Source of the DNA: Schmidtea polychroa
Lineage: Eukaryota
Assembly: GCA_044892525.1 (NCBI GenBank)
Contig: CM097887.1
Coordinates: 61,566,001-61,630,000, forward strand
Length of the DNA stretch: 64,000 nt
Reading direction: 5' to 3'
Shown: one piece after another, positions 4,357 through 64,000 of the stretch
How positions within the stretch are numbered: position 1 is the stretch's first letter
Layout of the letters: each line of letters opens with the position of its first letter
Notes under the pieces: generated by a model
The model's database searches: none
The model's input: only the letters and a program-made list of their open reading frames with translations
Told to the model about the DNA's origin: nothing
Program-made: the position numbers and the translations under genes

Positions 4357-4440
4357 AAAAAAATTGACCAAAATCGAAAATTGAACCCGGTACTCCCGGT
4401 GATAAAATTGAAGCCTATTCCCACTCCGCTATAATGGCTT
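4357..4440 (-). ncRNA. tRNA-like Pol III cassette 3
   Basis: Minus strand: A box TAGCGGAGTGG (4421-4431), TTATCACCGGGAGTACCGGGTTCAATT (resembles the tRNA-Asp 3' half; degenerate B box), then GGTCAA and a T run. It is a diverged tandem duplicate of cassette 2 and its flank. Confidence 0.55.
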
Positions 4441-4494
4441 ACATAATATATTTAATTAATCCTATTTTGTGTGTGTAAATTTTAATATATAAAA

Positions 4495-5781: not shown

Positions 5782-5810
5782 TATAATCCCTGATATTTTA
5801 ACATTTTAAA

Positions 5811-7220: not shown

Positions 7221-7231
7221 GTCGACAAGCC

Positions 7232-8632: not shown

Positions 8633-8654
8633 TACCATTTTTGATACCATTAAA

Positions 8655-35900: not shown

Positions 35901-36849
35901 GATGTCAACAATTTTTCTAACAATTATTGGACTTGTTAATTCAATCGATATTAAATATTTAACAGAATTTATAGGAGATAAAGAGATCCTAATAAACATT
36001 TCGCCATACGAAATCAATGTATTTAACTTAAATAGAATGCCAATAAGGGATTTATACCTAGAAACAACCAATGATACACCAATCAGACTAATGGAGAAAA
36101 GGGAAGAAAGATCCACTAATGAATTCGAAAAAGGGGATATCGTTAAATTTATAAACTTAAAACCCAACACAGAATACACCCTATGTGCACAATGGAACCT
36201 AGAGATGCATACATCACAAATAAAATGTAAAAAAATAACAACACTACAACAAAAAAAGCAGAAAATAACCAAACGAATTAACATAAGTACAATGCTCAAA
36301 ACAACTATGTCAACTACTACCTTAAGCACAACAACTACTCAAAAAACCGTTCAAACAATAACAAGTACAGATGTAACAACTGAGTACAAAACAAGAAAAC
36401 AAGCATATATAAAATTTGTAAGAGCAACACCATGGCAAATAAAGGAAAAAATAAAGTTACCACCGGGAAAACCCGTCGTGATAAGTAATTGGGATGAATT
36501 ACAAGCTTTTCAAACAAAAACACTCAAACCATGTTGGTCCTTTTATGTAATGTCAGCAAGCATCCTAGCAGTAGCAATTCTAGCAATAGCACTAGTATAC
36601 AAATCTACAAAAAATACAAGTGGAAACGGCAGCGGTATCGGCACCGACTGGTCAATAGTATACCAGGGCAGTTTCACTTGGACAGAGATATACCAGGGCA
36701 ATATACAATGTCCACTTGAGTGTAATAATTTCATAAAATGGTCAATAATATTAAATAAAATCACATATATAAATATTTATAAAAAAAGTGCGTATAAGGT
36801 TAAACCCACAATGCGCAATCAATATGTATATTTACATTTCCTTTTTTGA
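35899..36849 (+). CDS. Signal peptide / FN3-like / Thr-rich stalk / TM module fused in frame to the integrase C-terminus
   Basis: Within ORF 35104-36849: MMSTIFLTIIGLVNS, LKPNTEYTLC, TTMSTTTLSTTTT, FYVMSASILAVAILAIALVY. Confidence 0.65.
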   Translation: MMSTIFLTIIGLVNSIDIKYLTEFIGDKEILINISPYEINVFNLNRMPIRDLYLETTNDTPIRLMEKREERSTNEFEKGDIVKFINLKPNTEYTLCAQWNLEMHTSQIKCKKITTLQQKKQKITKRINISTMLKTTMSTTTLSTTTTQKTVQTITSTDVTTEYKTRKQAYIKFVRATPWQIKEKIKLPPGKPVVISNWDELQAFQTKTLKPCWSFYVMSASILAVAILAIALVYKSTKNTSGNGSGIGTDWSIVYQGSFTWTEIYQGNIQCPLECNNFIKWSIILNKITYINIYKKSAYKVKPTMRNQYVYLHFLF

Positions 36850-36879
36850 ACAGAAATCAATAGAATAGCAATATCGACA

Positions 36880-38676: not shown

Positions 38677-38680
38677 GGAA

Positions 38681-39770
38681 TGTTGGATGACAGGGGTCGA
38701 AGAATTGAAAAATTCGAGTTAACAAAGTATTATCAAACAGGCCCGAATCGATACCGGGTGAATATATTCGCAGAAAGAAGACTGTTTCCAAACAATCAAG
38801 CGTGATTTAACAATTACTATATTAAGAGACAAATATGATTTAATCTTTCTAACAATAATGAATCTTTGGGATTGTATATTTTATAACAATTTATATCCTC
38901 ATCTTTATTTTATTGTATATGGTATAAGCTGCATATTTTATTTTAGATTGTATCTTTCATTTTTATCTGCTGTATAGATTCACATTTTATTTTTTTTTAT
39001 ATTGTAGTAATTCATATTTTATTTTTTTACAACGTAGTAATTTATACTCTTATATCCTTTTGTACAATATATTATAATAATTTATATTTTAATTACATTT
39101 AAATAATCCACAAAAAAGGGAAATATAAAATCTGGGTAAATAAAGAAACAATTTATTAAGTAAATAAGGAAGGTCGCAGTTGGGAAATAACCCATGTGTG
39201 AGTTCTGAATAAATAAAAAGAAGAGAGGGAAATTTGGTAAATAAACAAGAGAAGTAGTTTTGAGTCCGTTTGAATGTGGGTATTGTGTAAAAACAAATAA
39301 ATGGGGTTTTCTTATGTGGATTGAGTAAACAAAAATTCAGTATATATACTGAACCAAAAATCACAAAATTCGCCCAAAAAATAAGCGATTAGTACTGCTT
39401 TAGAAGGTAAATCCTTACAAAGCATAAAAATCAGACAGACACTACAAAAACGTCTAAAGGTTATTACAAGCAACACAACACGCACATATAACACGCACAT
39501 ATAACACGCACATATAACACGCACACACAAAACACAACACGCATCGTGAAAGTAAATCAAAAAGAGTTTGAAGGGAATAATTGATTGTAAAAGAGTTTGA
39601 AACGAGAGATTGATTTTGAAGTTATTCAAGCCGATAATTTGAATTGGTAAAAAATTTTATATTAATAAATTTTAGTTACAAATTTGGCCTTTGTATTTTC
39701 ATATTTATATATTTATATAGTTATAACCAGTGCACGTTGGGTTTCAATAAATATTATTGAGACCTCAACA
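38681..39770 (+). repeat. 3' LTR (1,090 bp)
   Basis: TGTTG...CAACA, preceded by a short purine run GAGGAA. Confidence 0.95.
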
Positions 39771-42496: not shown

Positions 42497-43060
42497 ATGG
42501 AGGAAATTATAGAAAATGTGAAACCTGGAGTTAAAACATCATATTATTTAGAATATACATTTGTAGCTGCTGCTAGTGAAGGGAAAATGAGAGCTTTAGC
42601 GCGTTTAAATGGTGAAAGAATTGACGTTAACTGCCGAGATGCTCTTGGTAGAACTGGTCTTCACTGGGCTTGTCAAAATGGGCATTTTGATATTGTTAAA
42701 TATTTATTGGCGAATAAAGCAGAAAAAGACATTGTAGATGCTGATCTTATCACGCCTCTTCATTTGGCTGCCTTGAATCAGCATCTCAAATGTGTTCAAA
42801 TGCTTGTTTTGGCACAATCTAATTTGAACGCTTGTACTAAATCTGGTTGCAGACCTAAGGATTTGTGTCCATATGAATCCGCTACTTGGTGGGTGTTGAC
42901 ACGTGCCGAAGAAGGTGAATATCCCGACCCGTTAGTTTTTCCAGGCCCATCAGATTTACCTTTTGTTCCTAAATACGCGTTACCAAAAAGACCTGAAACT
43001 CCCGAAGATGAACGGAAACGTAAAGCCGCAATGAATAAACAAAAGAAACCTAAAAAATAA
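42497..43060 (+). CDS. Ankyrin-repeat protein (187 aa, single exon)
   Basis: GRTGLHWACQNGHFDIVKYLL and LITPLHLAALNQHLKCVQMLV ankyrin repeats. Confidence 0.9.
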   Translation: MEEIIENVKPGVKTSYYLEYTFVAAASEGKMRALARLNGERIDVNCRDALGRTGLHWACQNGHFDIVKYLLANKAEKDIVDADLITPLHLAALNQHLKCVQMLVLAQSNLNACTKSGCRPKDLCPYESATWWVLTRAEEGEYPDPLVFPGPSDLPFVPKYALPKRPETPEDERKRKAAMNKQKKPKK

Positions 43061-43789
43061 AGTATTTTATAGGTTTATTTTAAGAATGAGTTAAAATATT
43101 TCTTTTAATAAATGTGAAATGCGCAATTGTGATTTACTAAATAAAAATATATTATATATTACGACCTGAACGCGATTTCAACTAATAGGTAGTGTGAAGG
43201 AAAAGGAAAATCGCAGAAACCAGCATTATTAATTCACAGAAGAATTGACGAAGCCAGCCAGAAGATATCAGCAAAAAAGTGCAAGCATTTTTGGAAACAA
43301 GAAAAGTAAATATTAAACTGATAACAGAGGATTGAGGTTTAGAAAGATGACTATTGTATACGGAGTTTTAGTAATCGATCACAGCAATGACCAATTTATT
43401 AATTTCGTATTAATCTTTTTGATTAAATAACACTAGGAGTCAGTAATTAAGTATTAAATAAAAACTCAACGCGTTGCAGTATTTTATTTATATTGCAATT
43501 TGCAAACAAATTTTATGCTGCAGTATTTATTGGATAACATTTGGAAAGTTATTAGACCCCTGTGACCCATATACAAACCGTCTTTCATCTATTTGTGGGC
43601 TTACACTCTTTACTTTTGACCAGAGGTCTTAAACTCAACTCAATATGATGGCCAATTTAAGACAAGAACACCCTAAACACAAAACGCAAACCTTGCATTA
43701 AGTTTATTTAAACAAAAATATATACATCACCTAGTAAACAATGATATTAAAGAAATAAAATAATCAAAAATAAAACGTCCAAATTTAAA

Positions 43790-44720
43790 ATAAATGCAAG
43801 AAGTGTCACATGAAAACTGACTCATATATAACAGAAAAACACAAAAATTACAAAAATAAACTTGAATAAAGTCGAATTAAAGAAAAAACTTTAGAAAATG
43901 TAACATAAAGAAAATTCTAGACGAAAAACCCAGGACAATCTATAAAACTGGCGAAATCCATCATGGTCCCCATTCAATACAATATAATCTAAGAAAAATA
44001 AATAATTTAGTCTAAAATATAAAAATCTTAAAAAAAGAATCCATAAAAAACGACGCTAAAATAACAATTAGAATAAATTTAATATGGAATGTTCTTGAAA
44101 TTCCTAAATCCATCATGGAAGCAAAGTTAATAAAAATAATGCAAAAATAAATTCCAGACCCCTATGAAGGATTATTGGCCAAACGCTAGTTGTGACAATT
44201 TCACTTATTGTGGAATTAGATATAATTGTAACGTTAAATTATTCTTATGTTTATGTACAGTTTCAAATTTGTTTGTTCGAGTAGTGAGATATAAATAGGA
44301 AATGAGATCCGGAAACACAATCTAAAATAGAGGGATCAGGAAAAATCGGACACAGGCCTTCTATTAGCAGTCTGTGGACCCAAGGGAGTACTGGACAGTT
44401 ATAGTATACAAAATATGTTCTCTTTTTGCTAGTACTCCAACCCTTGATATATCAACCAAGGATTAGGTTAACAAATCAGACCCGTGGCGATGGAGATGAG
44501 GAGGTTGTGTATAAGTATATAGTATAGGTGTATAGTTGTGTATAAGGTTCTTGTTTACTTATCAAGTAGCAATATGATAATAAGAGTAGAATCATAAGCA
44601 CAAGTGATTAGTGCAATAGAGACCTAAATGAAAAACGGACACAGGCCTTTTATCGGCAGTCCGCGGACCCACTGGAGTACCTGACGATTATAGTCTATCA
44701 AGACATACTCACTTCAGCAT
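43790..44720 (-). mobile_element. Old, internally deleted relative of the TG...CA family
   Basis: 44340-44470 and 44630-44700 match the reverse complement of the family 5' region (GGACACAGGCCTT..GCAGTC..GGACCC); 43790-44180 resembles the family 3' region (AAATCCATCATGG blocks). Confidence 0.5.
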
Positions 44721-45092
44721 GAAACGGTAAAATTTGGATTATCTATAACCCACCAATATTAAGAAAGTTTTCTCTTTGTATAAATTTTAGTCACTAAACA
44801 AATAATTAATTGCCACCTTGATCCTTGGATTCTTTTCATAACATAATTTATTTTAATATTTTTATTTGCTCTTGTCAAAGAGAATTTTTGTTTATCTTAT
44901 TGCAATGGTTTATGAATTTGACAACTTTATAATTGTAGATGATTTATTTCATTGACCTATTTGCAACAACTGCCAGTAACTCGACAAATACTTAATTATG
45001 TTGAAATCCTCAATTAAAAATGAAATAATTATAAAAAAATAATTTTTTTTGCTATCAACAAATAGGTATTTTAATAATTACAGCTTTTAAAT

Positions 45093-45686
45093 TTAACTTG
45101 ATGAGTATGGAATCAAAATTGGTTTGGGGCATTTTGGTTCATTGATATCTTCCTTATCCATTTCTGGTTTTTTCTCTTTTCGTACTTTTCGATTTTTTCT
45201 TGTAAAGATTTTAATTTCTGCATGATATCTTATTAAGGCTGCTAAACTCCAGCATAAGGCTACCAGTAGAAATAACATTTGATTCCATAAAATGTTGTGA
45301 CAGGCTATTGCAAAACATACATTCGCCATTAAATTTACAGATAAAATTACTAAAATTAAAACTTTTCTTGTTCCGAAGTTGTTTTTTGTAGAAGAACACA
45401 AAGACATTAGGAATAGAACTGAGAAGGCAGTCATTAATATTCCACCTACGAAAAAGAAAATAATTGAAAATACTACTGCTACTTTTCTTCCCAGAGTTTG
45501 CTGAATAACTTTGGCGTGAAAACATTCTGTAAGAATGTAGCCGCAGCCCCACAGCCGACTGGCCAAGGCAACTATAAGAAAACATAAGGATATCAAAACT
45601 GTACAATAAGAAAAATAATCCAATTTTGGTTTCCTTCTCCCATCGTTGGAAGTAGCTGAATTGGTTGTACAAATTGTACTAGTCAT
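45093..45686 (-). CDS. Small four-TM (claudin-like) membrane protein, paralog 1
   Basis: Four hydrophobic segments and a W-G-C-G..C first loop; intronless; ATG at 45686. Confidence 0.75.
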   Translation of the reverse strand: MTSTICTTNSATSNDGRRKPKLDYFSYCTVLISLCFLIVALASRLWGCGYILTECFHAKVIQQTLGRKVAVVFSIIFFFVGGILMTAFSVLFLMSLCSSTKNNFGTRKVLILVILSVNLMANVCFAIACHNILWNQMLFLLVALCWSLAALIRYHAEIKIFTRKNRKVRKEKKPEMDKEDINEPKCPKPILIPYSSS

Positions 45687-45937
45687 TAACAAGAGCTATT
45701 GATGTTATTATTAATTAAAATTAAGAATTCATTTTTAATATTTTAATCTTTTTTTCATATTCAATATTTATCAGATATCACAGTTTTGGTTGCTCAACAA
45801 GATCTTAAAAAATGATATTTTTTCATCCAAGGTTTATAAGTTAGGAACAGTTATTATTACATTATTGGGGAACAGATTATGTAATGCAAAATCGTAAAAT
45901 ATAATAATCAAAATATAATATGTAATACACCAAAGCG

Positions 45938-46615: not shown

Positions 46616-48959
46616 CTTATGATTGTGTTGGGCTAGAACTGACTTCTAGACCCAAATTTCTAATTGTGACCGAAATGTGTAGGTACACAGCATGCAAAAA
46701 GCAAAAAGTATAGTTAAATATTAAAAACTACACCAAATAACCAATAGTAATTAAAGGAAAAAACAACAAAAACCTAAAACACAGAAAATCTAACTCAAAA
46801 ATAACCAAATAAACATAGAGTTACAAAAAACAAACTCGAATAACTTAAAAGATGGTAAAAACAGTAAAAGAGTCCAGAAAAACCCAGAACATTCCATAAA
46901 AATGGCGATGACCATCATAAAAGCTACCTTAAACAATAAAATTTAGGAAAAAATAAATAATTAGTAATAAAAATAAAAAATCTTAAAAAGAAATTCATAG
47001 AACAGCAGTTAAAATGAAAATTGTATTAAAAAATAAAATAGAATGTTCTGGAACCGTTCCAAATCCATCATGGACGTAAAATTAACGAAAAATAATTAAA
47101 AAATAAAAATTTAAAAATAAAAAAAAAATTATGGCACAAAAATCGCCATTAAAAATATCAAAATCACGAAATAGAAAATTCTGGAATAAAAAGAATTCGA
47201 GTTTGTTTTAATGCATCAATACATACACGTGTACAAAATAGGTATATATACCGACGCATTTTGGTCACAATTTAATCTTTTTGTATGCCAAAAAATTTTT
47301 TCTTAGAAACTTCGAGTAATACTGAAAGTAAGGACTATTGATTGATTTTATATCATAACTGTATTTCATTATTATTATGTTCATTATATTGATTAACGTT
47401 TTGTCCTTTTGTTTAATTCTACTATTACAGAACAAGAGTGACCAGCGTCGTCGTAGACGGATTATATCCACGACGCTGATCAGCCTTGTTTCCAATTAAT
47501 AGTCCACACACACACACAATCGGGTCTACGACCCTACATGCACAAAATTTCATTTTTTTTTAACCGGAAGGTCGCCACGAACAAATGGTTTCTAACCAGG
47601 AGTAGGGCGGTAAATCCATCCAGGTAGTTGGCATAGTCGCAGGGACTATGCGGACGAAATAAAATTTGGGCTAGTAATCGCGGGAAACATAATACAATAA
47701 GGCCTATCGTACCGTATTCAGTTGAGTCGGGAAAGTAGGAAAATTTTAATTAATTCGACCTTCCGGTAAACGACATATCTAAAATACACACTCAACTATT
47801 CTATAGGAATACATCATTAAGAAAATCTAAACGGGAAATATCCCAGACTTAAATGATCACGAAAGTTCTCAAGTAGTCGGCTAATTACACAAACTATTCA
47901 AATGTTTAATATTTTTGATATCAAATATTATTAATTTACTCTTATCGATATTACTGGTAATCATATTTAAATCCGAAAGTCTATAATCAAAAAGCCAGAA
48001 TCTAATTTAAATGCGATGGTGTAATTATTCTTGGATAACGATTTTAAACCCATGTGAGCCAAACTTGTGCTTCATATAATTTTAGGTTAATGTGGACATT
48101 ATATTCCAAACCGATATCATTAGAATGTATTTCAGGGAGATATATGCCTATACTAATTATTAACTTGGTACTAGATAAAAGATTTTCTACATATACCTAC
48201 TAGTATCAACATCACCTGACTATTTTAGAGATGTATATATTAGTTGATTAAAAGGAATCTGCCCTACCCAAAGGACGTTCTCTAAACATATACCCGGTAG
48301 CCCATTTTTTGGTTAATAGAGATTTGTTATTAAACCCCACCCTCTAGAATCGTGTTATAAGAATTTATCTATTAACATTTATATGAATGTGACTAATTAT
48401 TATATAATGACTCTCAGATCATTCCATGAAAGTTCTCCTGTTCATCGTCATACCTACTATATACTGGCTAGGTAAATACTTTAAAAATTAAAATATAATC
48501 CTTAATTCATATCTATTCGAATAATTATAAATCATCACTTTAGTTATTCAAAGTGTTTTTATGTTTATTGCCTTACCTAGTAAGCATCGGTTATATAACT
48601 GCTTAGAATTAAAACAGAGTCCTCATTTTGGGGCCATATGAATGCCCTTAAATGCCTAAATTAGTTCAAAGTTTTTGTCATACATATACTAGTTATATAG
48701 ATACTATAAAATAAAATATGATTTTTGGTTCATGTCTATTTGCCTAATTATAGGATAACCCTTAATCAATTCTGTAAAGATTTTGTGTTTACTGTAGTGT
48801 ATATTATATAAATACTTTAGAAATTTTTAAAACTCAACCGTATTTTTCCCATAATTATGATAATGATATGTATATATTTCGATTGTAAAAATCTTCTATA
48901 ACTACCCCTTCGAATCATATAGTCGTCAATTGAATTATTCTAGGACAACAACTCCTACT

Positions 48960-49270
48960 ATCATTCCTATTAACATCATTAGCATTATTATTATTGTTAC
49001 CATTACTATTGCTATAATTATTATTATGGTTATTATCATATCACTACTATTATTATCATTATTATTAATACTATTATTTTTCCCAGCATTATCATTAGCA
49101 TTATCATTATTAATACCATTGCTATTACCATAATTATCATTATGGTTATTATTAATAGTACTGTTATTATTAGTATTATTGTTATTATCATTATTATTAT
49201 CATTACCATTATTATTATTATTATTATTACCCTTAATATTATTATTATTATTAGTAACATGATTATCAAT
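48960..49270. repeat. (ATT)n microsatellite of copy C
   Basis: Imperfect ATT run. Confidence 0.9.
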
Positions 49271-51434
49271 AAAACGTTACTATTAATAGGAAAGTTCAAA
49301 ACCGACAGTATCGATTTTTTCTTTCCCTCATAACAAAGTTGGACCAATAATACCGCTTCTATTATTAGTAACAACCCTGCAAACCAAGGGTTACCCCTAC
49401 GAACTACTCCTAACTGACTGAATAGCACATACTCTCCCCTACACGAGCCAATCGCCATCGACCATGTCAGTAGGAACTCTAATCTTTCGATAAAACCTAT
49501 CTCACCCATGCGAATTTAACCCTTGTTACCCCAGAAGTAGAACGCATGTAAGCCACGGGACCTAGTCCCCGAAAGTGACGGTCTGAATCGGAATACCCAC
49601 CCAGTAGGACCAAAAGTAAGGAGTAATAACAAGTCGTGATTACTAACTATATAGGTTCTCATGGGGAGTTAACAAAATTACTCGATAATTATTAATTTAC
49701 GTCAAACAAAATTACTTAAATAAGAATCAACAAAAGCGAAAATGTATTTAATAAAATCAAAAATTTTGTTTACGAAACCATTCTAATCACAAAAAGAATC
49801 TTACCGGTAACATTAAGGAATGTCTAGAGAGGGGACTACTCAGAACAACCGAGTCCCAATTTTCACTTTAAATTCCTGTGGCACAGATCAGTAAAATCCT
49901 GAAACCACCATAAATCCCCAAAATTTTCACCTAAATGCCCACGAATTGGAAGTATAGCCATACTTTGGATTCCACTAAACAGTAATAACTCCAATACGGT
50001 GAATGATTGAAATCCTAAAAATCGAGGAATTAGAGACCCACTCCTGAAATTATGCAACTACAAAAGATAAAAATTTTAACTTACTATCGAGCACCAGCTG
50101 ATGAAAGGGCCACTTACAACCACTATGGTCAGGGATTCACAAAGAGTTGAATACAAATTCATACAATTTGCAACCTCCGCTTCCCATAGTGGGTCCTAGT
50201 AGCATAAATTTTACCAAAAAAAAAAATTATCCATGGAGGATTCTAAAAAATTGAAAAATAATATTTGAATAAATAGTTAAATTAAAACTTTGAATGATTT
50301 AAACAACCACTATTAAAAGTTTAATATTTGAATTAATATAGATTAGTATAAATAGTTAAATTAAATCTTTGCATGATTTAGACAACTACTATTAAAAGTT
50401 TAATTTATAAAATTTTAAACGCTCACTTCTACTGTATCAACCAGTAGTTCATCAAAACTAAGTTCATGGATTTCCACTTTAAATATACGAACTACAATTC
50501 TGTAACCGAGACTTATAAACTTGGATTTCGTAAGTCTCAAGCCAACTTAAATTAAATTAAAGAAGAAATCGAAAGGGGAAATTAATTAGCATTTTAGGTC
50601 CATTTTCCCTACCTAAGATATCGTGGAGATGCGGGTCGCGTTTATCTTAAATGTAACTGTACATTGAACGTCTTAGAGTAACCGAACGTAAATGGGAGAA
50701 CGAGGATTCGTTTTAACCTCTCTTTTATCATTACAGCCATGCCCAACACTGAGCCAAGGAAAGTACAAGAAGGTCACTCGTCAAATGACTGGAGCCTCGA
50801 CAGTATCGGCGGGGAGGCAGACGAAGCCGTCCGACTGAGGGAGGAAGCAGAAATTGCCAGGCTAAGGTCTAGATGGATCTAGTACAAGATCCATGACTGG
50901 ACCTACCAGAATGTGATCCCAGTGACCCCGAAGGTGGAACCATATATCAACCGCACCTCGTTGGCTTTGCTCGACGCATTCGACGATGCGAAGGAGGCGG
51001 TGGACCGGTTGCACCGGCTCGAGGTAGCAACCCTAGCCGGCGAGCTCGAAGATATCGATGGTTACGCTCGAGCCCAATGGCATCCTGAGCGGACCGCAGC
51101 CCTCCGCCGTGGGCTGTGGTGGGTTACAGGTACTGAAAAATCTTTACCCCCTCATGCTGTTTCCAGCGTAACCCAGAATACAATTTATAGTTGACCACTT
51201 GATACCCGTTGAGCAATCAACGTTGGTACTGTATCAAGGGCTTGGGCACTAGCAAAAAGTGAGCATGCTTAGCATACTATAATTGTCTAGTACCCACTGG
51301 GGTTCACGGACTGCCGATAGAAGGCCTATGTCCGTTTTTCTTTGTCCTTATTCCGAAAATCAACATTATGGCAAATTCGAAATACCCAGATATGAATACA
51401 CCCATAATATTTATTCACAACACAAAATCAAAAC

Positions 51435-51896
51435 TCATAGGGTTATAGTCGGTTCTTTCGGTGCAGACTCCGACGAAGTAGCCTTGAGCGTCGCTTGGGC
51501 CTGACAGGCTTGGCGGATTTTCGCCCGCGCCGCTTTACCCGGCCGGATCTTCTTCTTCGGGATCTTCGACGCTGCGCATTCCTTTCGTTGGTGGAGCAGC
51601 TCATCCATAGGGCGGATCCTGGAGATGACCTCTCGATCAAGGTTTTGTTGGTGCGACTGGACTTCTAGCTCTCTCACCCTCAGGCGGAGGGCCCGCAACT
51701 CAACTTGATCTTGGGCGCTCTGGAGTTGCAACTGGGTGATGAGTTTCATTCGCTTCTTCATATCTGTGGGCGGGAACCAGGTGCCCTCGAAGTTTCGGCA
51801 ATGGGCCTTAAGTCGCGTTAACTTGGCCCTATACTCTTCTACCTGTTGTTGCGCCCTCTCTCTGTCGGCTCTCATTTCTTCCAGGAGTTTTATCAC
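51435..51896 (-). CDS. ORF-A, copy B
   Basis: Homolog of 20971-21429. Confidence 0.7.
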   Translation of the reverse strand: MIKLLEEMRADRERAQQQVEEYRAKLTRLKAHCRNFEGTWFPPTDMKKRMKLITQLQLQSAQDQVELRALRLRVRELEVQSHQQNLDREVISRIRPMDELLHQRKECAASKIPKKKIRPGKAARAKIRQACQAQATLKATSSESAPKEPTITL

Positions 51897-52323
51897 TGAA
51901 ATAAATAAAAATTAGTATCTTTTCACACTTTCGTCAAGTATCCACGTTATATCGCTAACACCATTGTGGCAAAAGTCATAATCTCCCCGTCGCAGCCCGC
52001 ATCCGTGCGCACCTAAACCCCAACTCCGGTCTTATGAGTTTCACTAAGATGTTATGAGGTTGGTGATAATCGTCAACATCTAAAGGAATACCAGTATATA
52101 CGTATACAATAAGGAAATTCGAACAATTAACTTAGTATTAACAAACAAAACATAAAATAACAACATTTTCACATAAGTTAAGAGAAAATCAAATGCAGAA
52201 TTGCAAGACAATCACACTTTACACTGCGATGATAACGAAGTCGAGACATACTAATCATTATAGTGAGTAAGAGTCCACTCGAAGTCGTATCACAAGGCGC
52301 GGATATTTGGCCCGGCGATTATC

Positions 52324-52782
52324 TTAGTTGAATTGGGCGGTTTTCCGCGGACGCCCACGTTTTCTCGCCGGTACCGCTCCCCGTCGAGGAGTTCCTAAGT
52401 ACTCCAGCTCCCGGCGAAGAGCTGCGGTCCGCTTTGGGTGGCACTGGGCTCGGGCGTAGCCGTCGATGTCTTCCAACTCGCCGGCCAGGACTGAGGTTTC
52501 GAGCCGGTCCAGCCGGTCCACCGCCTCCTTCACATTGTCGAAGGCATCACTCAGAGCCAGTGACGTATAATTAATATACGGTTCGATCTTCGGGGTCACT
52601 GGAACCACATTCTGATAGGTCCAATCGTGGATTTTGTACCATATCCACCGGGACCTTAGGCGGGCAACCTCTGCATCTTCCCGTAGTCGTACGGCTTCGT
52701 CTGTTTCCTCGCTTGGTGGTCCGCGGCTTGAATCGGAGGATGAGGGTCCGGCCTGTGCGTTCCATATCATGGTGTTGGGCAT
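52324..52782 (-). CDS. ORF-B (AT-hook), copy B
   Basis: Homolog of 21856-22335, ending RKRGRPRKTAQFN. Confidence 0.7.
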   Translation of the reverse strand: MPNTMIWNAQAGPSSSDSSRGPPSEETDEAVRLREDAEVARLRSRWIWYKIHDWTYQNVVPVTPKIEPYINYTSLALSDAFDNVKEAVDRLDRLETSVLAGELEDIDGYARAQCHPKRTAALRRELEYLGTPRRGAVPARKRGRPRKTAQFN

Positions 52783-54254
52783 ATCTGTAATGATAAAGGG
52801 ACATTAACACGACTCCCTGTCCATCCAACTACGGGGTTAGTCAAAAACGTCTGAATACACTTTCACCACTCACATTTTAGCATAATATACATTTCACCCA
52901 ACAGTTCACCCACTCGACAATAGTCTTACGGATTTGATAATTAATACAATAAAAATGGGTAATTTACATTTTATAAATTATATTTAAAGTTCAATTTTAA
53001 TGAAATAAATTTAAAGTCACCCTTACTGCTTTAGTAAGTAATACCCTAAAATTGGGTAATTTACATTTTTTAAATTAAATTTAAAGTCTGATTTTAATGG
53101 AATAAATTTAAAGTCACCCTTACTGGTTTGGTAATTAATATCATAAAAATGGGTAATTTACGTTTTATAAATTAAAGCTAAAATTATTCATTTTAGAATC
53201 CGTTGTTTAAGTTAATTAAAATTTTAATTTGTTAACTTACTATATAGCCAGTAAATTAAAAAGAAAAACTTGGAACCAGTATGGTCAGTGGAATTTATGC
53301 TGCTCTGACCCACTATGGAAAGCGGATATTGCAAATTGACTGAATTTACATTCAGCTCTTTGTGAATCCCTGACCATAGTGGTTGTAAGTGGCTCATTCA
53401 TCAGCTGATATTCGACGGGTAAGTCAACCTTTCATTTTTTAAATTTGTCTAGTTTTAGAAATGGGTTTTCAAGCCCTCCATTTTGGACATGGCATTTCAG
53501 GCAGTTAACATGTTGGGGTTATTGTCGCTTGGTATTAATCCCAGATATGCCTATATACTCAATTCGTGGGGCATTTAAGTGGGAATTTTGGGAATTTATA
53601 TTTGTTTCGGAAATTTTTCTTTCCTCGATTTATATGCCATGGTAATTTAAAACAACAATTGGACCCCGAGGGTTTCCGAGTAGCCCTCTTCTACTCATTC
53701 CTTGGTATTACTGGTGAGACTCTTTTACTTGCTAGGATGGTTTCGTAAGCAAATATTGTTGATTTCATTAAATATATTTTCACTTTTGTTGCATCTCATT
53801 CAAGTAATTTTTATGTATCGTAAAGTAATTTATCAAGTAATTTGGTTAACTCTTCCGGGAAATATGCATAATTAGCAATCATGAATTATTATTATTCCTA
53901 ACTTTCGATCCTACTGGGCAGGTATTCTAATTCAGGTCGTTGCTCTCGGGGACCCGGTCCCTTGGCATACATGAGATCTACTTCTGGGTAACAGGGTGAA
54001 GTCTGCCAGTGTCCTGGTTTTCATATACAGATTGGAGTTATCACCACTTTAGTTGACGTTGATTGGTCCGTTCTTGAGAGAGTATGTATCACCCATTCGG
54101 TTAGTTAGGAGTAGTTCGTAGGGGTTAACCCTTGGTTTGTAGGGTTGTTACTAATAATAGAAGCGGTATTATTGGTCTAACTTTGAAAAAAAAAATCGAT
54201 ATTGTCGGTTTCGAATTTTCCTATTAATAGTAACATGCCATATATAATCATGTT

Positions 54255-54256
54255 AC

Positions 54257-54291
<35 letters not shown>

Positions 54292-54304
54292 TTAAAGGTA
54301 ATAA

Positions 54305-54336
<32 letters not shown>

Positions 54337-54477
54337 AATTAATAGCATTAGTAATGATAATGATGATGGTAATGATAATCGTAATGATAATAACAATGAT
54401 AATTTTTAATAATAATGATTATAGTAATAGAGATAGTAATACTAGTGATACTTTACCAATAATAATAATGATAATAC

Positions 54478-54514
<37 letters not shown>

Positions 54515-54530
54515 CATAATCGTAACACCA
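54255..54530. repeat. (AAT)n microsatellite of copy B
   Basis: Imperfect AAT run. Confidence 0.9.
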
Positions 54531-57407
54531 AAGACAATACAACAGCAATGTTAATAATGGCGATAACGATAAGGTTAATCCTGATAAAAAGTGTAAGTTT
54601 TATGCAGTGGGTAATAGATGTATAATCCAGGGGGGGGGGTGTTCATGAAATTATTAGTTTACCATTTTAAAGACTAAGTATATATTGAATAGGTTACTTT
54701 CAGATATTAGTATAATAGATAATGAAGGTAGGATTCAGGGGGGGATGTTTATGAATATTTATAAATTAGTGATTCCATATTATATAAGCTAAATATATAT
54801 AAAAATAAGTGAACCTAGGACAATTAGGTAAATATATAATTTAGGGGCTAATTATGTAGATTTATAAATTATCATTTTAACATTTTGTAAGTTGAATATA
54901 TATCAAAATAAATTAGGATATCTAGGTATTGGACGATAGATATATAGTTCAGAGGATCATCTATGAAAATTTATAAACTATCATTTTTATATTTTATAAG
55001 TTAAATATATATACCCAAATAAGTTAGGATCTTTCTATATGAACATTTATAAACTGTCATTTTAATATTTCATAAGTTAAATATATACATCAGAATAAGT
55101 TAGGATATTGATGAATAAATATATAGTTCAAAGAACCATTTATGAAACTAGGTAAGTTATACATATTCCAGTGGGGTTATAACCATGAACTGGTGGTTTG
55201 ACGACTTTGTGACATTGGCAAGAAAGATTACCTTTTCTTTAAGTTTAATATACCGCTATATGCAATTACATACTGATGGTAAGGACACACTCTCTATGAA
55301 GACAACGAGAAAAGGGTGTTGAGGATAATGATAATAATCCTGGAGGTGATAGTACTATTAAGGCAAAATAGAATTCTTAAGGATTTCAATACCCGTAAGG
55401 TAATTATAAAGACTTGTAATTAATACATCATTGAACGTGATTATCTTTAAAATCGAACATAATTATGAATAATATCAATAAAATCTAATAACAATAGTTA
55501 ATATTGAGCATATTGAATAATAGTTTGTGCAATTAGCCGACTACTTGATAACTTTTGTGATAAATTGAGTCTGGGATTTTTCCCGTTTAGCTGTTCCTAA
55601 TGATGTATTTCCTATAGAATATTTGAGTGTGTAATTTAGATGTGTCGTTTACCGGAAGGTCGAATTAATTAAAATTTTCCTACTTTCCCGATTCAACTGA
55701 ATACGGTACGATAGGCCTTATTGTAATATGTTTCCCGCGATTACTTGCCCGCATTTTATTTCGTCCGCATAGTCCCTGCGACTATGCCAACTACCTGGAT
55801 GGATTTACCGCCCTACTCCTGGTTAGAAACCATTTGTTCGTGGCGACCTTCCGGTTAAAAATTTGAAATTTGGTGCATGTGAGGTCGTAGACCCGTATAG
55901 TGCATGTGAAATAATTAGTGGGAGCAAGGCTGATCAGCGTCGTGGATGCCATCCGTTTATGACGACGCTGGTCACTCTTGTTCAGTAATAGAAAAAAAAA
56001 TCAACAAGATAAAAATATAATAAACATAATAATAATGCAATACAAATAAAAATGAAATTAATCAACAGTCCTTACTTTCAGTGTGGTCCAAAATTTCGGA
56101 AAAAAAAATTTTTGGCATACAAGAATATCTGAATTGTGACGAAAATGCGTCGGTATATATACCTATTTTGTACACGTGTATGTATTGATGCATTAAAACA
56201 AACTCGAATTCTTTTTATTCCAGAACTTTCTATTTTGTAATTTTGATATTTTTAATGGCGATTTTTGCGTCATAATTTTTATTTTTATTTTTAAAATTTT
56301 ATTTCCTAAATATTTTTTGCTACTTTTTCCTCCATGATGGATTTGGAACGGTTCCAGAACATTCCATATTACTTTTAATTCAATTTTTATTTTTAACTGA
56401 TATTCTACGAATTTCTTTTTAAGAAATTTTATTTTTAATACTAATTTATTTATTTTCTACATTTTATTGTTTAAGGTAGCTTTTATGATGGTCATCGCCA
56501 TTTTTATGGAATGTTCTGGGTTTTTCGGGAATTTTTTGCTATTTTTACCATCTTTTAAGTTATTCGAGTTTGTTTTTTGTAACTCTGTGTTTATTTGGCT
56601 ATTTTGAGTTAGATTTTGCATATCTTCTTGTTTTTGTATAATTTTATTTAATTTCTGTGTTTTAGGTTTTGTTGTTTTTTTTTTCCTTTAATTACTATTG
56701 GTTATTTGGTGTAGTTTTTAATATTTAACTATACTTTTTGCTTTTTACATGTTGTGTACCTACGCATTTCAGTCACAATTAGAAGTTTGGGTCTAGAAAT
56801 CAGTTCTAGCCCAACAGCTGGAATGGCCGCGAAGTCCCTATCGAGAGCCGGGTCGAGCACGAAAGCGCGGTCGCCCACGAAAGATCAATCTAGTCTAATC
56901 AAAGTGATAACCGGATCAAGAGTCAGCACTGTGCTGTACCGTGCCGTGAACAAATTCACATTGATATATGACCGGTATTCGGTTTAATAAAATTTACGAT
57001 TTGCATGTATTGATTTCGACTTCTAAATGTACATTATTGTTTAACTCGATAAACGTCCTTTGTTACTCATTTATGTCTTGTATACTAATCTAATTGTGAA
57101 CATTTTCTTTATTTGGGTAATTAAAGTTAACTGGCATCCTCATTGATTATGCCCACCTGATGTTATTAGTCTGTTATTACTCGTAATCCAGTTATAGTTT
57201 TTTTTTCACGTAGTTTGACCACTATACATCTAAGGGTTAGTATTCATACCAACACCATGAGTCTTTGACTCCTAGGAGTAGAACGGGGTTTAGAGGCACA
57301 TAAATGCGGGGTTGCGGGGTGAGGATAGTGACTCATTTAGCGATGGTGGCCGTGATAGGGCAAGAATACATCGACAATAATGTAGAAGGAATTGATGTTA
57401 CCTTTGT

Positions 57408-57876
57408 TTTAGTGCTGAAACTCATGGAAGAGATGCGAGCCGATAGAGAGCGGGCGCAACAACAAGCAGAGGAATACCGGGTCAAGCTAGCACGAGTCAA
57501 GGCCCACTGCCGGAATTTCGATTGCACCTGGTTCCCGCCAGCCGAAATGAAAAAGCGGATGAAGTTAATCACTCAACTACAACTCCAGAGTGCACAAGAT
57601 CAGGTTGAGTTGCGGGCCCTCCGTCTGAGAGTGAGGGAGCTGGAGGTCAAGGCACACCAACAGGACCTTGATCGAGAGGTCATAGCCAAGATCCGACCCA
57701 TGAGTGAGCTGCTCCACCAATCGAAGGAAGGCACCCTAACAACAGCAATCCCGAGGAAGAAAATTCGGCCGGGTAAAGCGGCGCGAGCGAGAATAAGGCA
57801 AGCCAGCCAGGCCCAATTAACTCTCCACTCTACTGGATCAGGGGCTACCCCAATAGAATCGACAAGGAAACTATAA
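57408..57876 (+). CDS. ORF-A, copy C
   Basis: Homology to the other copies begins at TTTTAG|TGCTGAAACTC. The upstream part of the predicted 190-aa ORF is not conserved. Confidence 0.7.
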
Positions 57877-58468
57877 GTTGTCCATGTTATCCAAATAAAT
57901 CTTTACTGGTGTATCCATGTCTGTACATTTTGAATTTTTTTGTTGTTTGTTGTTGATTATTGCCGCGGGGACGAAAAGAAATTGGACATAGACCTTCTAT
58001 CGGCAGTCCGTGAACCCCAGTGGGCACTAGACAATTATAGTATGTTAAGCATGCTCACTTTTTGCTAGTGCCCAAACCCTTGATACAGTACCAACGTTGA
58101 TTGCTCAACGGGTATCAAGTGGTCAGCTATAAATTGTATTCTGGGTTACGCTGGAAACAGCATGAGGGGGTAAAGATTTTTCAGTACCTGTAACCCACCA
58201 ATTGTCTTGGGACATTTACGAGTTGAATTAGAATATTAGGATTTTTTCTTAATTTTACTAATCTGAGAATGAATCGAAGATTAAAATTCCAATGAGTCAC
58301 GAAGTCTCGATCCGCGCGCATATTTTCCGTCAACCTAATCACTAAATTTAGGTAATTACACAGACAGCAGAAATTAGTCTTTAATAATTTAGTCTAATTC
58401 GGTTGGATACTATTACATTATAGCAAGAAATCATTAGGGTGTACTAGGATAAATACTGATAATAAATA

Positions 58469-59559: not shown

Positions 59560-60885
59560 ATGTCAAATGAACGGAAGATATACGTGGGCAACTTACCTCC
59601 GGATTCCACGTCCAGAGACATAGAAAAGTTATTCAGTTGTTTTGGTAAAATAATAGACATTGACATAAAAAATCGGAATGGCCCACCATTTGCTTTTATT
59701 CAATTTGATGATCGAAGGTACTTTACCTTTAGAGGTTGCAACGTTAACTAGTCACATTAAATCTTTTTTTTCCATTTTAGAGATGCCGAGGATGCTATTA
59801 GAGAACGAGATAATTATGACTTGGAGGGATTTTCATTGCGAGTCGAGTTTCCAAGGGAGATTAAACAGAATAAAAAAGACTATAAAGAATATTCTAGATA
59901 CGAGAACCCGTTATACGCACCGCCGTTTGATCCATATGACATGTACTTACCGTATAATTATGGACCATTTCCAAGGCAGGATAGATTTCAATATTATGGG
60001 GATTACAGGCGTAACAATAACTACAACAATTATTCATATCAAAATCGAAGACCGAGACCTCCTAAAAGTACTGATTATCGGGTTTTTATTTCAAATATAC
60101 CGCCATACTCTAATTGGCAGGATATAAAGGATTTTATGAGGAGGTATGGCGATGTAAGCTATGCAGATGTATTTGGAAACGGAACCGGTGTTTGTGATTT
60201 TGTGTCGAAAGAGGATTTTAGATACGTGTTGAAATATGTTAACAACGTTAAATTTAAAACAGTTTCGGTAATAATTAATTTAATTTACATTAATTATTAA
60301 TTTAATTAATATAATAATTTAATTGTGGATTTTATATTATAAATATTTTGTACAGAATATACAGTTCATTTTATAACCAATATTCATGGGGGCAAATTAG
60401 GTTTTTTATTCAATTATAAATTGTGGAAAGTTTCAATTTTAAACTGGTAAAAAGCTTCGGTTAAAACAAATGAAATAATTATTTCGTCTCATTGATATAT
60501 TCAATTTACTTTTAAGAATTGTACTTGGATTGCTGTAGGATTTTACTTCTGTCATTTATTTTTGAAAACTATCAAGTAAACTTTAATTATCAATCAAGCT
60601 TTGACAGATTAATTGCAAAGAAAATACTGATATTTTATCTATTTGATATTCTAGGGTCAAACTTCATATATCAAAGTTGAGGAAGATAAAACTAGAAAGA
60701 GAAGTTACCATAAAAGATCACCTCGAATGCATAATAAATCGAGAAGCAGATCAAGGTCGAAAAGTAAATCGAGAAGTAGTAAATCGTCTCATTCAACTAC
60801 TCGAGATAAAAGTTCAACTAGTTCAGAGAGGTCAAAGAGTGGTCGAAAACGGATTTCCAAATCCAGATCAAATGAGAATGATTAA
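59560..60885 (+). CDS. SR splicing factor, SRSF1/SRSF9-like (RRM-RRMH-RS), 3 exons
   Basis: IYVGNLPPD..PPFAFIQFDD, NWQDIKDFMR, |GQTSYIKVE, RS tail. Exons 59560-59717, 59781-60267, 60655-60885. Confidence 0.9.
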
Positions 60886-63528
60886 TGATTGCTCACTTAA
60901 ATTGAATCTGTTGTAAAACTTTGTTTATCCAATTTAATTAATAATTAAATTTTTATATTTTTTATACATACAATAAATTTTGTTGTAAATTAATACAGTT
61001 ATTACAACAGCTTGACAATCTTAAGTATAGTGGAATAAGATTATTTTTTGGAATTTCTTAATGGTCAGTAGATTATTACTAAAAACTCTACCTTCGTTTA
61101 TTCTATTAGTTTTTATTTTATTCGTTAGATGGAGTACTAAAGGGTTAAGCAAAATAAACCACCTTTGAACAACTATTTTCATTTTTCAGAATAGATCAAT
61201 GTTTTATATTAATGGGCAGGGCAGTCGAGAGCCAGGCCGGGCCCCGCTGCAATTCGTCAGTACGGGCCATCTTTGCAATTATAAACTGATATATTTTTTT
61301 AAAAACATTTGTTTTAGTTATCATTTTTATTAATTATGAAATTACATGATACATATAATCTTAAATTGTCACAAACTTAGATTTTTAAAATTATTTAATT
61401 ATATAAAAATGCCAAATACGATTATATCGCGGGCCCCGATGATTTGCATCGTCCTCTTATCAGTGATATTAATGGGGTATCTGAAACCTAGAAAACCAGC
61501 GCTCTAGATAAATATTTCCCACAACGTAACAAATTTGATGTATAGTTGTAAAAATACAAATGAAATATTAAGAAAAACAAATTAAAGATGAACAAAAATA
61601 GATTTTAATAATAAATTATCCATAGAAATAACGAAAACAAAGATTTTTTTCATTATAAATTGCAGTTTTAATCATATATCAGTGCCGGTTGGGTTGCATA
61701 GGTTTTTGCATGATGAGAACTTGTTGCCGCATACCTTTCGACACTTGAAACCAGCTTCGCAATATTGCATACATTCTTTAAATAAATCTTTACAATTTTC
61801 TTCACATAATTTTAATTCAACAGCAAAAAGGGTTTTATTCACTACAAACAAACAAAATATCTGAAAATATTAAACAAGTAAATAAATGTCGCAGTTTATG
61901 TCGGAAATATTCTTCATAAGCTGCTATTTTAAACAAAAACAATTTTGTAATTTCCAATCAATTTTTAATTGGATTTTATTAATTTGCAATTTCATCATTT
62001 TCAAATTTTTATATTTGTAAATGAGATTAATTTATAAATTTAATTTAATATATAAAATTATAATATAATATAATATATAAAACGAACATAATTAAAGTTC
62101 ATTTAAAATCGTGAAATGTTAAAAACTTTAAAATTTTTTAAAAAATATATTTGATAGTTTTATAAAATTCACTAAAGGTTGATAATAAATATATTATTTA
62201 TTTATATTTTACAAAAATCGTAAAGCTACATACCAAATTCAGAAAAATGTTCATTATTTTCAAAGAATAGAGTAATTTAGATAAAATTTTATCACATTTA
62301 ATTTAATTTGCTGCGAAAAAACATTTTATATCTGAACTCAACGTGTGCTACCGAATGAATAAATTAGTTACACTCAAATTTAGATAAAGAAAATAAATTC
62401 GTACAAGGACTTTTAAATATTTAAATTGCTTTATAAAAATTTAGTTAATTTAAAAAAATTTTGAACTCCTTTAACCCTTAATAACCTAAATAATATATTT
62501 TTTTACTAAAATGAACTAACTATTATTTCTCACAAAACTTCATTAGAACACATCAATTGCTTGTTACAGCTCTACTGACTTTTCTGTACATACACAAACA
62601 CTTCCCAACACGATTTGTTTTATACAAACAAATACAAATTTTGCAAATAACGAACCAATGGAATGTTATGCCAAAAAGGGTTAATTGAGAAAATAATCAA
62701 AAAAATTGTTAATTTTCTAATTTTGCAATATCAGTTTAAAAAATAAATATTTTATAAATATGTCCTTAGGTATTTTTTTCTTTGTCGCAACCATTTATCT
62801 ATATCAAACAGTTTTCTAAATTTTTTAATATTAAAAACAGCTCACTAAAAGTTGTCTATGCTATATGAATTACGTGTGCTTATATTATTTTTGAAAATCG
62901 ACCATTTTATTCAAATTTACTTTAAATACTTTGTTTTTCAAATTGTTTTTTCACTATTGCTAACGTCACTTGTGAGTGGTGCAGCTTGGTTACATCTTGT
63001 TTTTATTGGGATATGTTATGGATTTTTCCTTTTCTTCTGAAATCGGATTTTTTATTAAACCCTTGAAGTACTTGTAATCCTCAGCTTCCTAATATTTTAC
63101 TCCAACAAAATAAAAAAGTAATTTGTAGTGTTCATGGATTAATAATTTAAATTAAAAAAATATTTTTCTAAATAAATAAACTTTTAATAAAATATTTTTT
63201 TTTAAATTTTCAAATATTTTAGATTTAAAATTTTTTATTATTTTTTTCGAATATGCAATTTAAAATCTATAAAGTTTTTCGTTTCTAACTGATGATGACA
63301 GTAAATTTGACGAAATGTATAATATAAGTGATATTTAAGTGCGTTTTCTAACATTATTATAATGTCATAAAATAAATAAGAAAAATTACAAACAATGTAC
63401 ATTTATTTTTTTTTCATTATTTGTAAATGGATTCACCGTGTCAGAATTTTGTCTGTTTATAAATATGAAAAAATAATTAAAAATGAATTCTTAATTTTAA
63501 TTAATAATAACATCAATAGCTCTTGTTA

Positions 63529-64000
63529 ATGTCTAGTACTACTTTTACATCCAATTCAAGTTCATCTTATGATGAGAAAGGAAGGCAAAAATTGGATTAC
63601 TTTTCCTACTACTCAGTTTTGGTATCTTTATGTTTTCTTATAGTTGCCTTGGCCAGTAGATTTTGGGGCTGCGGCCACATCATTACAGAATGCTTTCATT
63701 CCAAAGTTATTCAACAAACATTGGTAAGAAAGATGGCAGTAGTATTGGCAATTATTTTCTTTTTCATAGGTGGAATATTAATGACTGCCTTCTCAGTTCT
63801 ATTCCTAATGTCTTTGTGTTCTTCTACTACAAACAACTTCGGAACAAGAAAATTTTTGATTTTAGTAATTTGGCCTGTAAATTTAATGGCGAATGTATGT
63901 TTTGCGATAGCAAATCACATTTTATGGAATCAGTTGTTATTTCTCCTAGTGGCCTTATGCTGGATTTTTGCGGCATTGATAAGATATCATGCCGAAATAA
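63529..64000 (+). CDS. Small four-TM membrane protein, paralog 2 (runs off the window)
   Basis: Open frame from ATG 63529, highly similar to 45093-45686; shares ~47 bp of identical upstream sequence. Confidence 0.8.
   Translation, partial: MSSTTFTSNSSSSYDEKGRQKLDYFSYYSVLVSLCFLIVALASRFWGCGHIITECFHSKVIQQTLVRKMAVVLAIIFFFIGGILMTAFSVLFLMSLCSSTTNNFGTRKFLILVIWPVNLMANVCFAIANHILWNQLLFLLVALCWIFAALIRYHAEI

Follow-up and report, generated by a model that had tools for sequence, protein, structure and literature searches.

Putative solo long terminal repeats of a giant Gypsy-type element, carrying what may be a spliced accessory gene, in the planarian Schmidtea polychroa

A stretch of 64,000 nucleotides (nt) from the planarian Schmidtea polychroa (NCBI GenBank assembly GCA_044892525.1, contig CM097887.1, positions 61,566,001 to 61,630,000 of the forward strand; this whole stretch is referred to below as the window, and all positions are those within it) contains three copies of a unit of 5.7-6.0 kb that carries two open reading frames (ORFs), here called ORF-A and ORF-B. 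The reading that we favour, to which a probability of about 0.7 may be attached, is that these units are solo long terminal repeats (LTRs) of a giant Gypsy element of the Burro type, and that the LTR itself carries an accessory gene whose transcripts would be spliced into two isoforms. The argument is built on features that can be seen directly, namely the anatomy of the unit, its target site duplications (TSDs) and an empty insertion site for one copy, purifying selection on the ORFs, a promoter motif in common with a neighbouring LTR element, mosaicism among the copies and an anomalous base composition within the unit. An initial annotation of the same DNA had already put forward solo LTRs of a giant Gypsy with a protein-coding LTR as one of two possibilities, and it is this one that the present analysis prefers, on the basis of a terminal hexamer, the position of the promoter motif, a donor-like splice site and a shorter LTR-like relative, each of which is described below.

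The three copies were established by self-BLAST of the window together with a reading of the junctions, which places them where the initial annotation had them and confirms that all are complete. Copy A occupies 20650-26602 and has its ORF (sense) strand on the minus strand (5953 bp, including a gap of 217 Ns at 23806-24022); sense coordinate 1 of the unit is taken as position 26602 of this copy, on the ORF strand. Copy B lies at 51117-56816, likewise on the minus strand (5700 bp, with ORF-A and ORF-B both intact), and is nested within copy C (46626-58200, plus strand), which runs in the opposite orientation to A and B and is split by B into the pieces 46626-51116 and 56817-58200; these two pieces were compared separately throughout. 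Written in the plus orientation of copy A, the termini of all three copies read TGGTGGG...CCCAACA, an inverted match of 6/7; beyond about 11 nt the match is not significant, and positions 8-30 are not above chance (p ~0.1). Each copy is flanked by a different 4-bp TSD, this being TCCT for A, GCTG for B and, for C, CAAT in its own orientation (i.e. ATTG on the plus strand). The short TG...CA inverted ends and the three distinct duplications described initially are accordingly all present, as is the central (AAT)n tract, which was located in each copy (24028-24216 in A, 54257-54520 in B and 48984-49253 in C); what has to be corrected is the strand on which the termini had been written, since ORF-A and ORF-B sit on the opposite one. 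For copy A there is in addition an exact empty site: this copy has landed in a 5' LTR belonging to another element, its host, whose paralogous 3' LTR (99% identical) has the target uninterrupted, as a single TCCT at 39055-39058 (+).

That the unit contains no reverse transcriptase (RT), integrase or transposase, as had been stated at the outset, was found again by three routes. Pfam hits within it were nil except for a marginal AT hook, the gag, pol and integrase proteins of the window gave no tblastn remnants inside it, and an ORF scan found none of at least 80 amino acids (aa) beyond ORF-A, ORF-B and overlapping frames of the same GC-rich patch. Internal terminal direct repeats are absent as well, a comparison of the first with the last 1.5 kb of copy A having yielded two 11-nt chance matches only, and a primer-binding site (PBS) of the type seen in the neighbouring element was found in that host element only and not in the unit. 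Neither Rfam families nor tRNAs were detected when the window was scanned for them. With no internal LTRs or PBS, no long terminal inverted repeats (TIRs) and no gag, pol or integrase remnants, the unit is therefore not autonomous, and two other classes that were considered could be rejected: it is not a LARD or TRIM element, being without an internal LTR pair, PBS and polypurine tract (PPT), and it is not a long-TIR DNA transposon, the inverted match of its ends being only 6/7.

ORF-A lies at 20971-21429 (-) in copy A, 51435-51896 (-) in copy B and 57413-57876 (+) in copy C, and ORF-B at 21856-22335 (-) in copy A and 52324-52782 (-) in copy B. Five of the six ORF copies are intact, the exception being ORF-B of copy C (50739-56898, +), which is broken by the nested insertion of copy B and by one in-frame stop; its AT hook is still readable after the insertion. 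The purifying selection claimed for both ORFs was put to a dN/dS check and held: by the Nei-Gojobori method the ratio is 0.09-0.28 for ORF-A (six pairs, including a relative from outside the window; Fisher p 2e-6 to 9e-24) and 0.15-0.24 for ORF-B, and with synonymous divergence of up to about 1 the proteins are still 76-82% identical. When the A-B alignment is scanned for codon-phase substitution bias, only ORF-A and ORF-B show it. One stretch of 26 residues in ORF-A, noted earlier as identical in all copies with about ten synonymous differences, is indeed identical in 3/3, and the number of codons that differ synonymously is 11. Judged by these substitution patterns, ORF-A and ORF-B are real genes under purifying selection.

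Both ORFs stand out by their composition, with 52-62% GC overall and 57-69% at third codon positions (GC3); the other ORFs that were tested in the window have a GC3 of 14-41%, and outside the two ORFs the unit has about 30% GC. The high GC3 persists across lineages with dS up to about 1.3, and synonymous-site selection, exon definition in an AT-rich genome or foreign origin are all possibilities for its source. The predicted proteins agree with the description of a GC-rich pair comprising a coiled coil and an AT-hook protein. ORF-A encodes about 150 aa, which are modelled with moderate confidence (pLDDT 77) as a hairpin or coiled coil, in which a conserved WFPP turn connects two long helices, with a basic helix after them. 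For ORF-B (159 aa in copy A) the prediction is of helices and a disordered tail, on which a putative C-terminal AT hook, RKRGRPRK, is found in all three copies; this scores 17.0 (A) and 16.0 (B) against Pfam PF02178, just under the cut-off of 17.4, and the AlphaFold model of the protein has a pLDDT of 62.

Searches for relatives of the two proteins yielded little. By sequence there was nothing specific for either in Pfam, PHROGs or the solved structures of the PDB, and the ORF-A model found no fold match, Foldseek against the PDB returning generic helical hairpins only (E > 0.1). A profile of ORF-B run with HMMER against 1.84 billion representatives had no more than two hits, one to a repeat protein and one to an AT-hook protein, and these were rejected as spurious (BLASTP E ~1 in the former case, coverage of the AT-hook/basic tail only in the latter). 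A word search of 5.8 billion proteins with both ORFs gave matches for ORF-A alone, to a single metagenome cluster from the European Nucleotide Archive (ENA) made up of two 157-aa ORFs (P0001 and P0002) on contigs of 638 and 549 nt. The 638-nt contig (L001), which comes from a metagenome assembly of very low coverage (ENA ERZ2271643), has an ORF-A that is 80% identical with its frame kept, and aligns collinearly with genomic DNA that is unspliced, the acceptor-like site being present; the contig suggests flatworm DNA in that metagenome sample. Scans of viral and Joint Genome Institute (JGI) metagenome contigs for further copies, using an exact 27-mer from the conserved end and peptide patterns, found none.

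When the unit is read along the ORF strand, its layout is that which might be expected of an LTR with a small gene placed inside it. The U3-like 5' region (25950-26602, minus strand, in copy A) is A-rich, 89-92% identical between A and B, and devoid of coding signal. Directly after it there is a core-promoter-like motif, GTATATATAC-N14-CAAAATTC, which combines a TATA-like and an initiator-like element and is found at 25918-25949 (-) in A, 56131-56162 (-) in B and 47242-47273 (+) in C; in copy A it stands 653 nt from the sense 5' end of the unit. Of its 18 specified bases all are matched in A, with one mismatch in B and two in C. A predicted exon 1 follows (25869-25905 (-), 37 nt, in A; 56076-56118 (-) in B and 47285-47327 (+) in C, both 43 nt), with its ATG 45 nt past the TATA; it is open and of phase 1 in all copies despite the 6-nt difference in length, and ends in each of A, B and C at a conserved donor-like site (AAA/GTAAGG, where the slash marks the exon boundary).

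Beyond the donor comes an AT-rich, intron-like stretch of about 3.5 kb (22338-25868, minus strand, in copy A), for the most part poorly conserved and including the (AAT)n tract, the N gap and tandem repeats. Within this predicted intron there is a conserved non-coding block at about 25350-25640 (-) of copy A, inside a somewhat larger region, 25340-25790, which has equivalents in B, C and an older partial copy, is 94-100% identical between copies, is GC-richer than its surroundings and contains a palindromic stem (CAGCGTCG...CGACGCTG). The region folds stably on both strands, and its folding does not discriminate between them. In copy B the intron-like region also has tandem repeats of 97, 109 and 76 nt (at 52938-53176 and 54832-55106), which are absent from or different in A and C and add to the variability of this part in both length and sequence.

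The acceptor-like sites that the initial annotation had noticed before both ORFs are there, and can now be extended to a splice model with a donor and a first exon. The ORF-B exon (21856-22337 (-) in A, 52324-52784 (-) in B) is preceded by ..TTACAG and begins CC ATG, while the ORF-A exon (20971-21428 (-) in A, 51435-51895 (-) in B, 57413-57876 (+) in C) is preceded by ..TTTTAG and begins TG CTA. In all three copies the two acceptors are conserved, and they are compatible with the phase-1 donor; at that of ORF-A the nucleotide identity jumps from about 52-55% to 79-85% between adjacent windows of 100 columns. As the phase of the donor fits both acceptors, the simplest model would be one of two alternative two-exon mRNAs that share a leader of 12-14 residues. 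The chance of obtaining matching phases together with a preserved frame may be put, as a rough estimate, at 1 in 100, which makes the model suggestive but falls short of proof. A fusion of ORF-B to ORF-A in frame was considered and rejected, as ORF-B has its own stop after the AT hook in all copies and no conserved donor before that stop.

A conserved AATAAA lies about 20 nt after the stop of ORF-A and about 300 nt from the 3' end of the unit (20945-20950 (-) in A, 51410-51415 (-) in B, 57894-57899 (+) in C); a second candidate poly(A) signal, 74 nt from the end, was discarded as it occurs in copy A only. The remainder forms a U5-like terminal region (20650-20880 (-) in A, 51117-51347 (-) in B, 57970-58200 (+) in C), and the last 230-280 nt or so are the best-conserved part of the whole unit, with 96-97% identity for all pairs over one stretch of 100 columns. 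Folded as RNA, the terminal 231 nt give z -3.8 on the ORF strand as against -2.2 on the other. The structure includes five pairs with compensatory changes, four of them in one hairpin, and the count of G.U cells (31) against A.C cells (5) favours the ORF strand.

The element into which copy A is inserted provides a true LTR for comparison. It spans 20271-39770 (+), with an internal coding region at 27589-38676 and LTRs of 1.09 kb that are about 99% identical (5' LTR 20271-27317, interrupted by copy A; 3' LTR 38681-39770); the TSD is TTTG, the LTR ends are TGTTGG...CAACA and a PBS-like sequence, TGGTGCCGCG..., begins two bases after the 5' LTR. Its domains run in the order gag/PNMA, CCHC zinc knuckle, BCL2-like, Monjiviricetes-type fusion glycoprotein, protease, RT, RNase H and integrase. 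Burro and GYPSM1, giant Gypsy-like elements that dugesiid planarians harbour, are said to have been described by Grohme et al. in 2018 and by Jurka in 2007. They have been reviewed, with Burro being characterised by an env between gag and pol, a BCL2-like motif and accessory ORFs (PMC6431247). The host is a bona fide LTR element, and its domain order is the Burro architecture. After the integrase it also has two large ORFs with no Pfam match, and its coding region is split into seven ORFs, i.e. there are at least six interruptions as compared with the single polyprotein described for Burro.

Both LTRs of this host element contain the same motif, GTATATATAC-N14-CAAAATTC (26888-26919 and 39340-39371), at 660 nt from the LTR start, and it is found nowhere else in the window beyond these and the unit copies. 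The unit, read in the sense direction, and the host LTR both start with TGTTGG, and in both a donor-like site follows some 65-80 nt past the TATA, that of the host (AAG/GTAAAT) lying about 65 nt after the motif. The likeness to Burro thus comprises the AT-rich type of genome, TG...CA ends, 4-bp TSDs, the core-promoter motif with its position and the terminal TGTTGG of the neighbour's LTR. The differences are that the neighbour's LTR is 1.09 kb long and non-coding, whereas the unit measures 5.7-6.0 kb and has two selected ORFs, and that no internal region belonging to the unit is present in the window.

Two further relatives of the unit are found in the window. The first is an older partial copy (18502-19857, minus strand), 69-80% identical, which extends from the sense 5' end through about 1.3 kb; its TATA-like site is degenerate and offset, and the conserved block upstream of that site is still recognisable. 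The second is an LTR-like relative of 1.16 kb (43594-44755, plus strand) with a homologous U3, a TATA at the aligned column and a 3' end reading ..AACCCACCA; its ends are those of the unit. In this relative the terminal conserved region, partly duplicated, comes directly after the TATA part, and the gene module of about 5 kb is absent, so that to judge from the alignment it has the size and plan of an ordinary LTR. Because it follows the same plan minus the module, the giant unit looks like an ordinary Burro-type LTR in which a gene has been placed between promoter and U5.

The three copies of the unit do not diverge evenly along their length. A and C share 96-100% identity across some 3.3 kb at the centre, as against 47-86% over the ORF end (dS 0.56 in ORF-A). 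In the final 100 nt it is B and C that agree, at 99%, and A that differs; in ORF-A the B/C pair is among the most divergent (dS 0.93). On this pattern of identities the copies are recombinant mosaics. Mosaics of this sort would be the expected product of template switching between co-packaged RNAs, though gene conversion among genomic copies could also yield them.

From this anatomy we infer an LTR that would be transcribed and spliced, and something of what its proteins might do. An element of a giant, retrovirus-like Ty3/Gypsy family akin to Burro would have been inserted by its integrase, after which recombination between its two LTRs would leave a solo LTR. Read on the ORF strand, such an LTR would consist of a U3 of about 680 nt with a TATA and initiator, a transcribed part of about 5 kb, and a structured U5-like end of about 270 nt. 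The transcribed part would amount to a small gene, in which an ATG exon of 12-14 codons with its donor is followed by an AT-rich intron of about 3.5 kb and then by alternative acceptor exons in frame with exon 1, leading to either ORF-B or ORF-A, with the poly(A) signal 20 nt past ORF-A. As promoter, exon and intron set and poly(A) signal would all lie within the LTR, every LTR, even when solo, would by itself form a complete transcription unit for the two small proteins. ORF-B might be a nuclear accessory factor that binds AT-rich DNA or chromatin, and ORF-A an oligomerising, basic nuclear protein that acts on the transcription or RNA handling of the element; lineages of the element would recombine through template switching between co-packaged RNAs.

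Taken further, this leads to the tentative and rather doubtful proposition that an LTR has here become a complete, intron-containing and alternatively spliced gene between LTR promoter and U5, such that the element would carry two copies of it and solo LTRs would stay expressible. The family of units may well be catalogued already in planarian repeat collections. In the literature surveyed, no description was found of an LTR with a conserved, apparently spliced protein gene downstream of its own promoter.

Several known systems resemble the unit in part. In mouse mammary tumour virus (MMTV) the sag gene lies in U3, and lentiviral nef and spumaviral bel/bet overlap U3. Common to these and the unit are coding sequence inside the LTR and acceptors (predicted ones, in the unit) just before the ORFs. 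In sag, nef and bel, however, the coding sequence is in U3 and the 5' exon comes from the provirus, whereas the ORFs of the unit lie downstream of its own promoter-like site, with an ATG exon, donor and poly(A) signal of their own, and a solo LTR could therefore express them, unlike in those cases. The likeness to sag and nef suggested initially thus holds loosely, as regards coding within an LTR, and fails as regards U3, the gene being placed downstream of the LTR promoter. For sheer length the nearest parallel is Ogre of legumes, with LTRs of 1.9-6.5 kb and extra ORFs in the internal region (PMC6431247). The extreme LTR length is comparable to that of the unit, in an element of a plant lineage. 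To our knowledge no conserved protein-coding genes occur in Ogre LTRs. In the LTRs of deltaretroviruses and spumaviruses the major splice donor lies inside R, which is about 200 nt long and non-coding. A donor-like site some tens of nt past the TATA/initiator is likewise seen in the unit and in the neighbouring Burro-like LTR; the difference is one of scale, about 200 nt of R as against about 5 kb from promoter to poly(A) signal in the unit. LARD, TRIM and Ginger elements, finally, resemble the unit in having no RT or integrase of their own (these being supplied in trans), 4-bp TSDs and TG...CA-type ends. LARD and TRIM are defined by an internal LTR pair, PBS and PPT, of which the unit has none, and Ginger-type TIRs, at tens to hundreds of bp, are longer than the 7-bp inverted repeat of the unit.

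A number of observations weigh against taking the unit as a solo LTR with a gene of its own. No direct pair of units flanking a PBS-gag-pol-PPT arrangement exists in the window, the three copies and two fragments all being solitary. The R that is implied, from promoter to poly(A) signal, would be about 5 kb long, and we know of no precedent for this. The single outside relative (L001) matches unspliced DNA and brings no transcript support. As for the comparison with the host element, the expected number of 0.03 that goes with the restriction of the motif to the unit copies and host LTRs overstates its significance, since the motif had been noticed before testing. Global alignment of the U3 of the unit with the host LTR scores no better than shuffled sequences (z 0.9), and there is no usable end-anchored alignment; only the 18 motif bases, the position of the motif and the terminal hexamer are common to the two. 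The covariation test at the terminal region relied on a structure derived from copy A and on five sequences, two of them partial. Lastly, the termini fit the host LTR ends slightly better when the unit is turned round (17/21 as against 13/21).

This last point bears on whether the units could be solo LTRs with the opposite sense strand, in which case the ORFs would be antisense genes, like the antisense bZIP gene of deltaretroviruses. The better fit of the copy A plus-strand ends to the neighbouring LTR (11/14 + 6/7, compared with 8/14 + 5/7) speaks for this, as does the somewhat better folding of the 25340-25790 block on the plus strand (z -3.8 vs -2.6). For the orientation adopted here we rely on the promoter motif, on base composition and on covariation, which is modest: the TATA-N14-initiator belongs to the ORF strand and is as far from the start as its counterpart in the neighbouring LTR, it is the ORF strand that is A-rich at the U3-like end, and the G.U/A.C counts and fold z-scores of the terminal region point the same way. 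Taking these together, an antisense arrangement seems distinctly improbable. It seems unlikely, too, that the unit is instead a stand-alone, non-autonomous gene cassette with TG...CA ends, put in place by an integrase acting in trans, whether Gypsy/Burro, Ginger-like or Maverick-type (rve). Such a cassette would account for the solitary state of all copies in the window with their perfect TSDs, and for the presence in the unit of a complete gene with promoter-, splice- and poly(A)-like signals; a Maverick element not far away encodes an rve integrase; and copy A is younger than its host, whose LTRs are about 1% apart, so that a full-length insertion must have collapsed to a solo LTR quickly. 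Nevertheless, there is no known mechanism by which it could be copied, because its own transcript would lack the first 680 and last 280 nt; it has no long TIRs; the Maverick has a 6-bp TSD, TIRs of 940 bp and ends unlike those of the unit; the layout matches both the neighbouring true LTR and the LTR-sized relative of 1.16 kb; and mosaic recombination fits retroviral template switching. For a new element mobilised in trans, which was the other possibility raised by the initial annotation, there is nothing specific in favour.

Doubts of a different kind concern the ORFs and the assembly. The ORFs might have no function for the element, being either chance ORFs in a GC-rich patch or a decaying fragment of a captured host gene, given that GC-rich DNA yields long ORFs in several frames and that no homologue or known domain beyond the AT hook was found. 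This we consider very improbable in view of the dN/dS values of 0.09-0.28 (with p down to 1e-23), a dS of up to about 1 between proteins still 76-82% identical, the intact state of 5/6 copies and the frame kept in the outside relative. An assembly artefact, through collapse of full-length elements to one LTR or through chimeric joins, would be in keeping with the assembly gap that adjoins a microsatellite in copy A, and is scarcely credible where the three copies are independent, the TSDs and the empty site are exact and the nested insertion is clean, the more so as the sequence at the gap position is continuous in copy C. All this said, the solo LTR with an internal gene is the reading that best accommodates the evidence as a whole.

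Other features of the window may be described briefly. The Maverick/Polinton-like element (2806-17849; 15 kb) is bounded by TIRs of about 940 bp, with 98% identity in their core, and by a 6-bp TSD, TTTGTA. Its coding capacity includes a double-jelly-roll capsid, a packaging ATPase of the A32-like type, an rve integrase that also has a phospholipase-A2-like domain, a 791-aa zinc-finger ORF and several ORFs without a match. The element sits in a tandem-repeat array (2106-2805 and 17850-18036). The DNA on either side of the Maverick (1-2105 and 18037-19857, the latter including the older partial copy mentioned above) may be one old copy of the 5.8-kb unit that the Maverick has split; hints of this are a tract resembling (AAT)n (1632-1792) and a weak match to copy B (1833-1888), both at about the expected distance from the older partial copy. 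If so, the ORF end of that old copy would lie beyond the left edge of the window. Around copy C there are possible host genes or gene fragments (42497-43060, 45093-45692, 59821-60300 and 63470-63998), the candidates comprising a single-exon ankyrin-repeat ORF, a multi-pass-membrane-like ORF and an ORF with an RNA recognition motif (RRM) domain; a 530-bp region of the multi-pass-membrane-like ORF recurs inverted at 63470-63998, with 87% identity.

LTRs are normally regulatory DNA, and solo LTRs are usually counted as dead remnants. If the present reading is true, solo LTRs could form a dispersed multi-copy gene family, and the annotation of planarian repeats would change. It would mean a new route by which a retroelement may spread accessory proteins, in this case an AT-hook protein and a coiled-coil basic protein, and would provide the first LTR with a repeated transcribed part that is kilobases long; it would then have to be asked how a repeat region of several kb is accommodated in reverse transcription. 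The very high GC3 of both ORFs in a genome of 30% GC is a separate puzzle, whether of synonymous-site selection or of exon definition. Burro-type elements are abundant, and PIWI control of transposons in planarian tissues extends to them (PMC8532177); for giant elements of this type, ORF-A and ORF-B would be concrete candidates for accessory factors.

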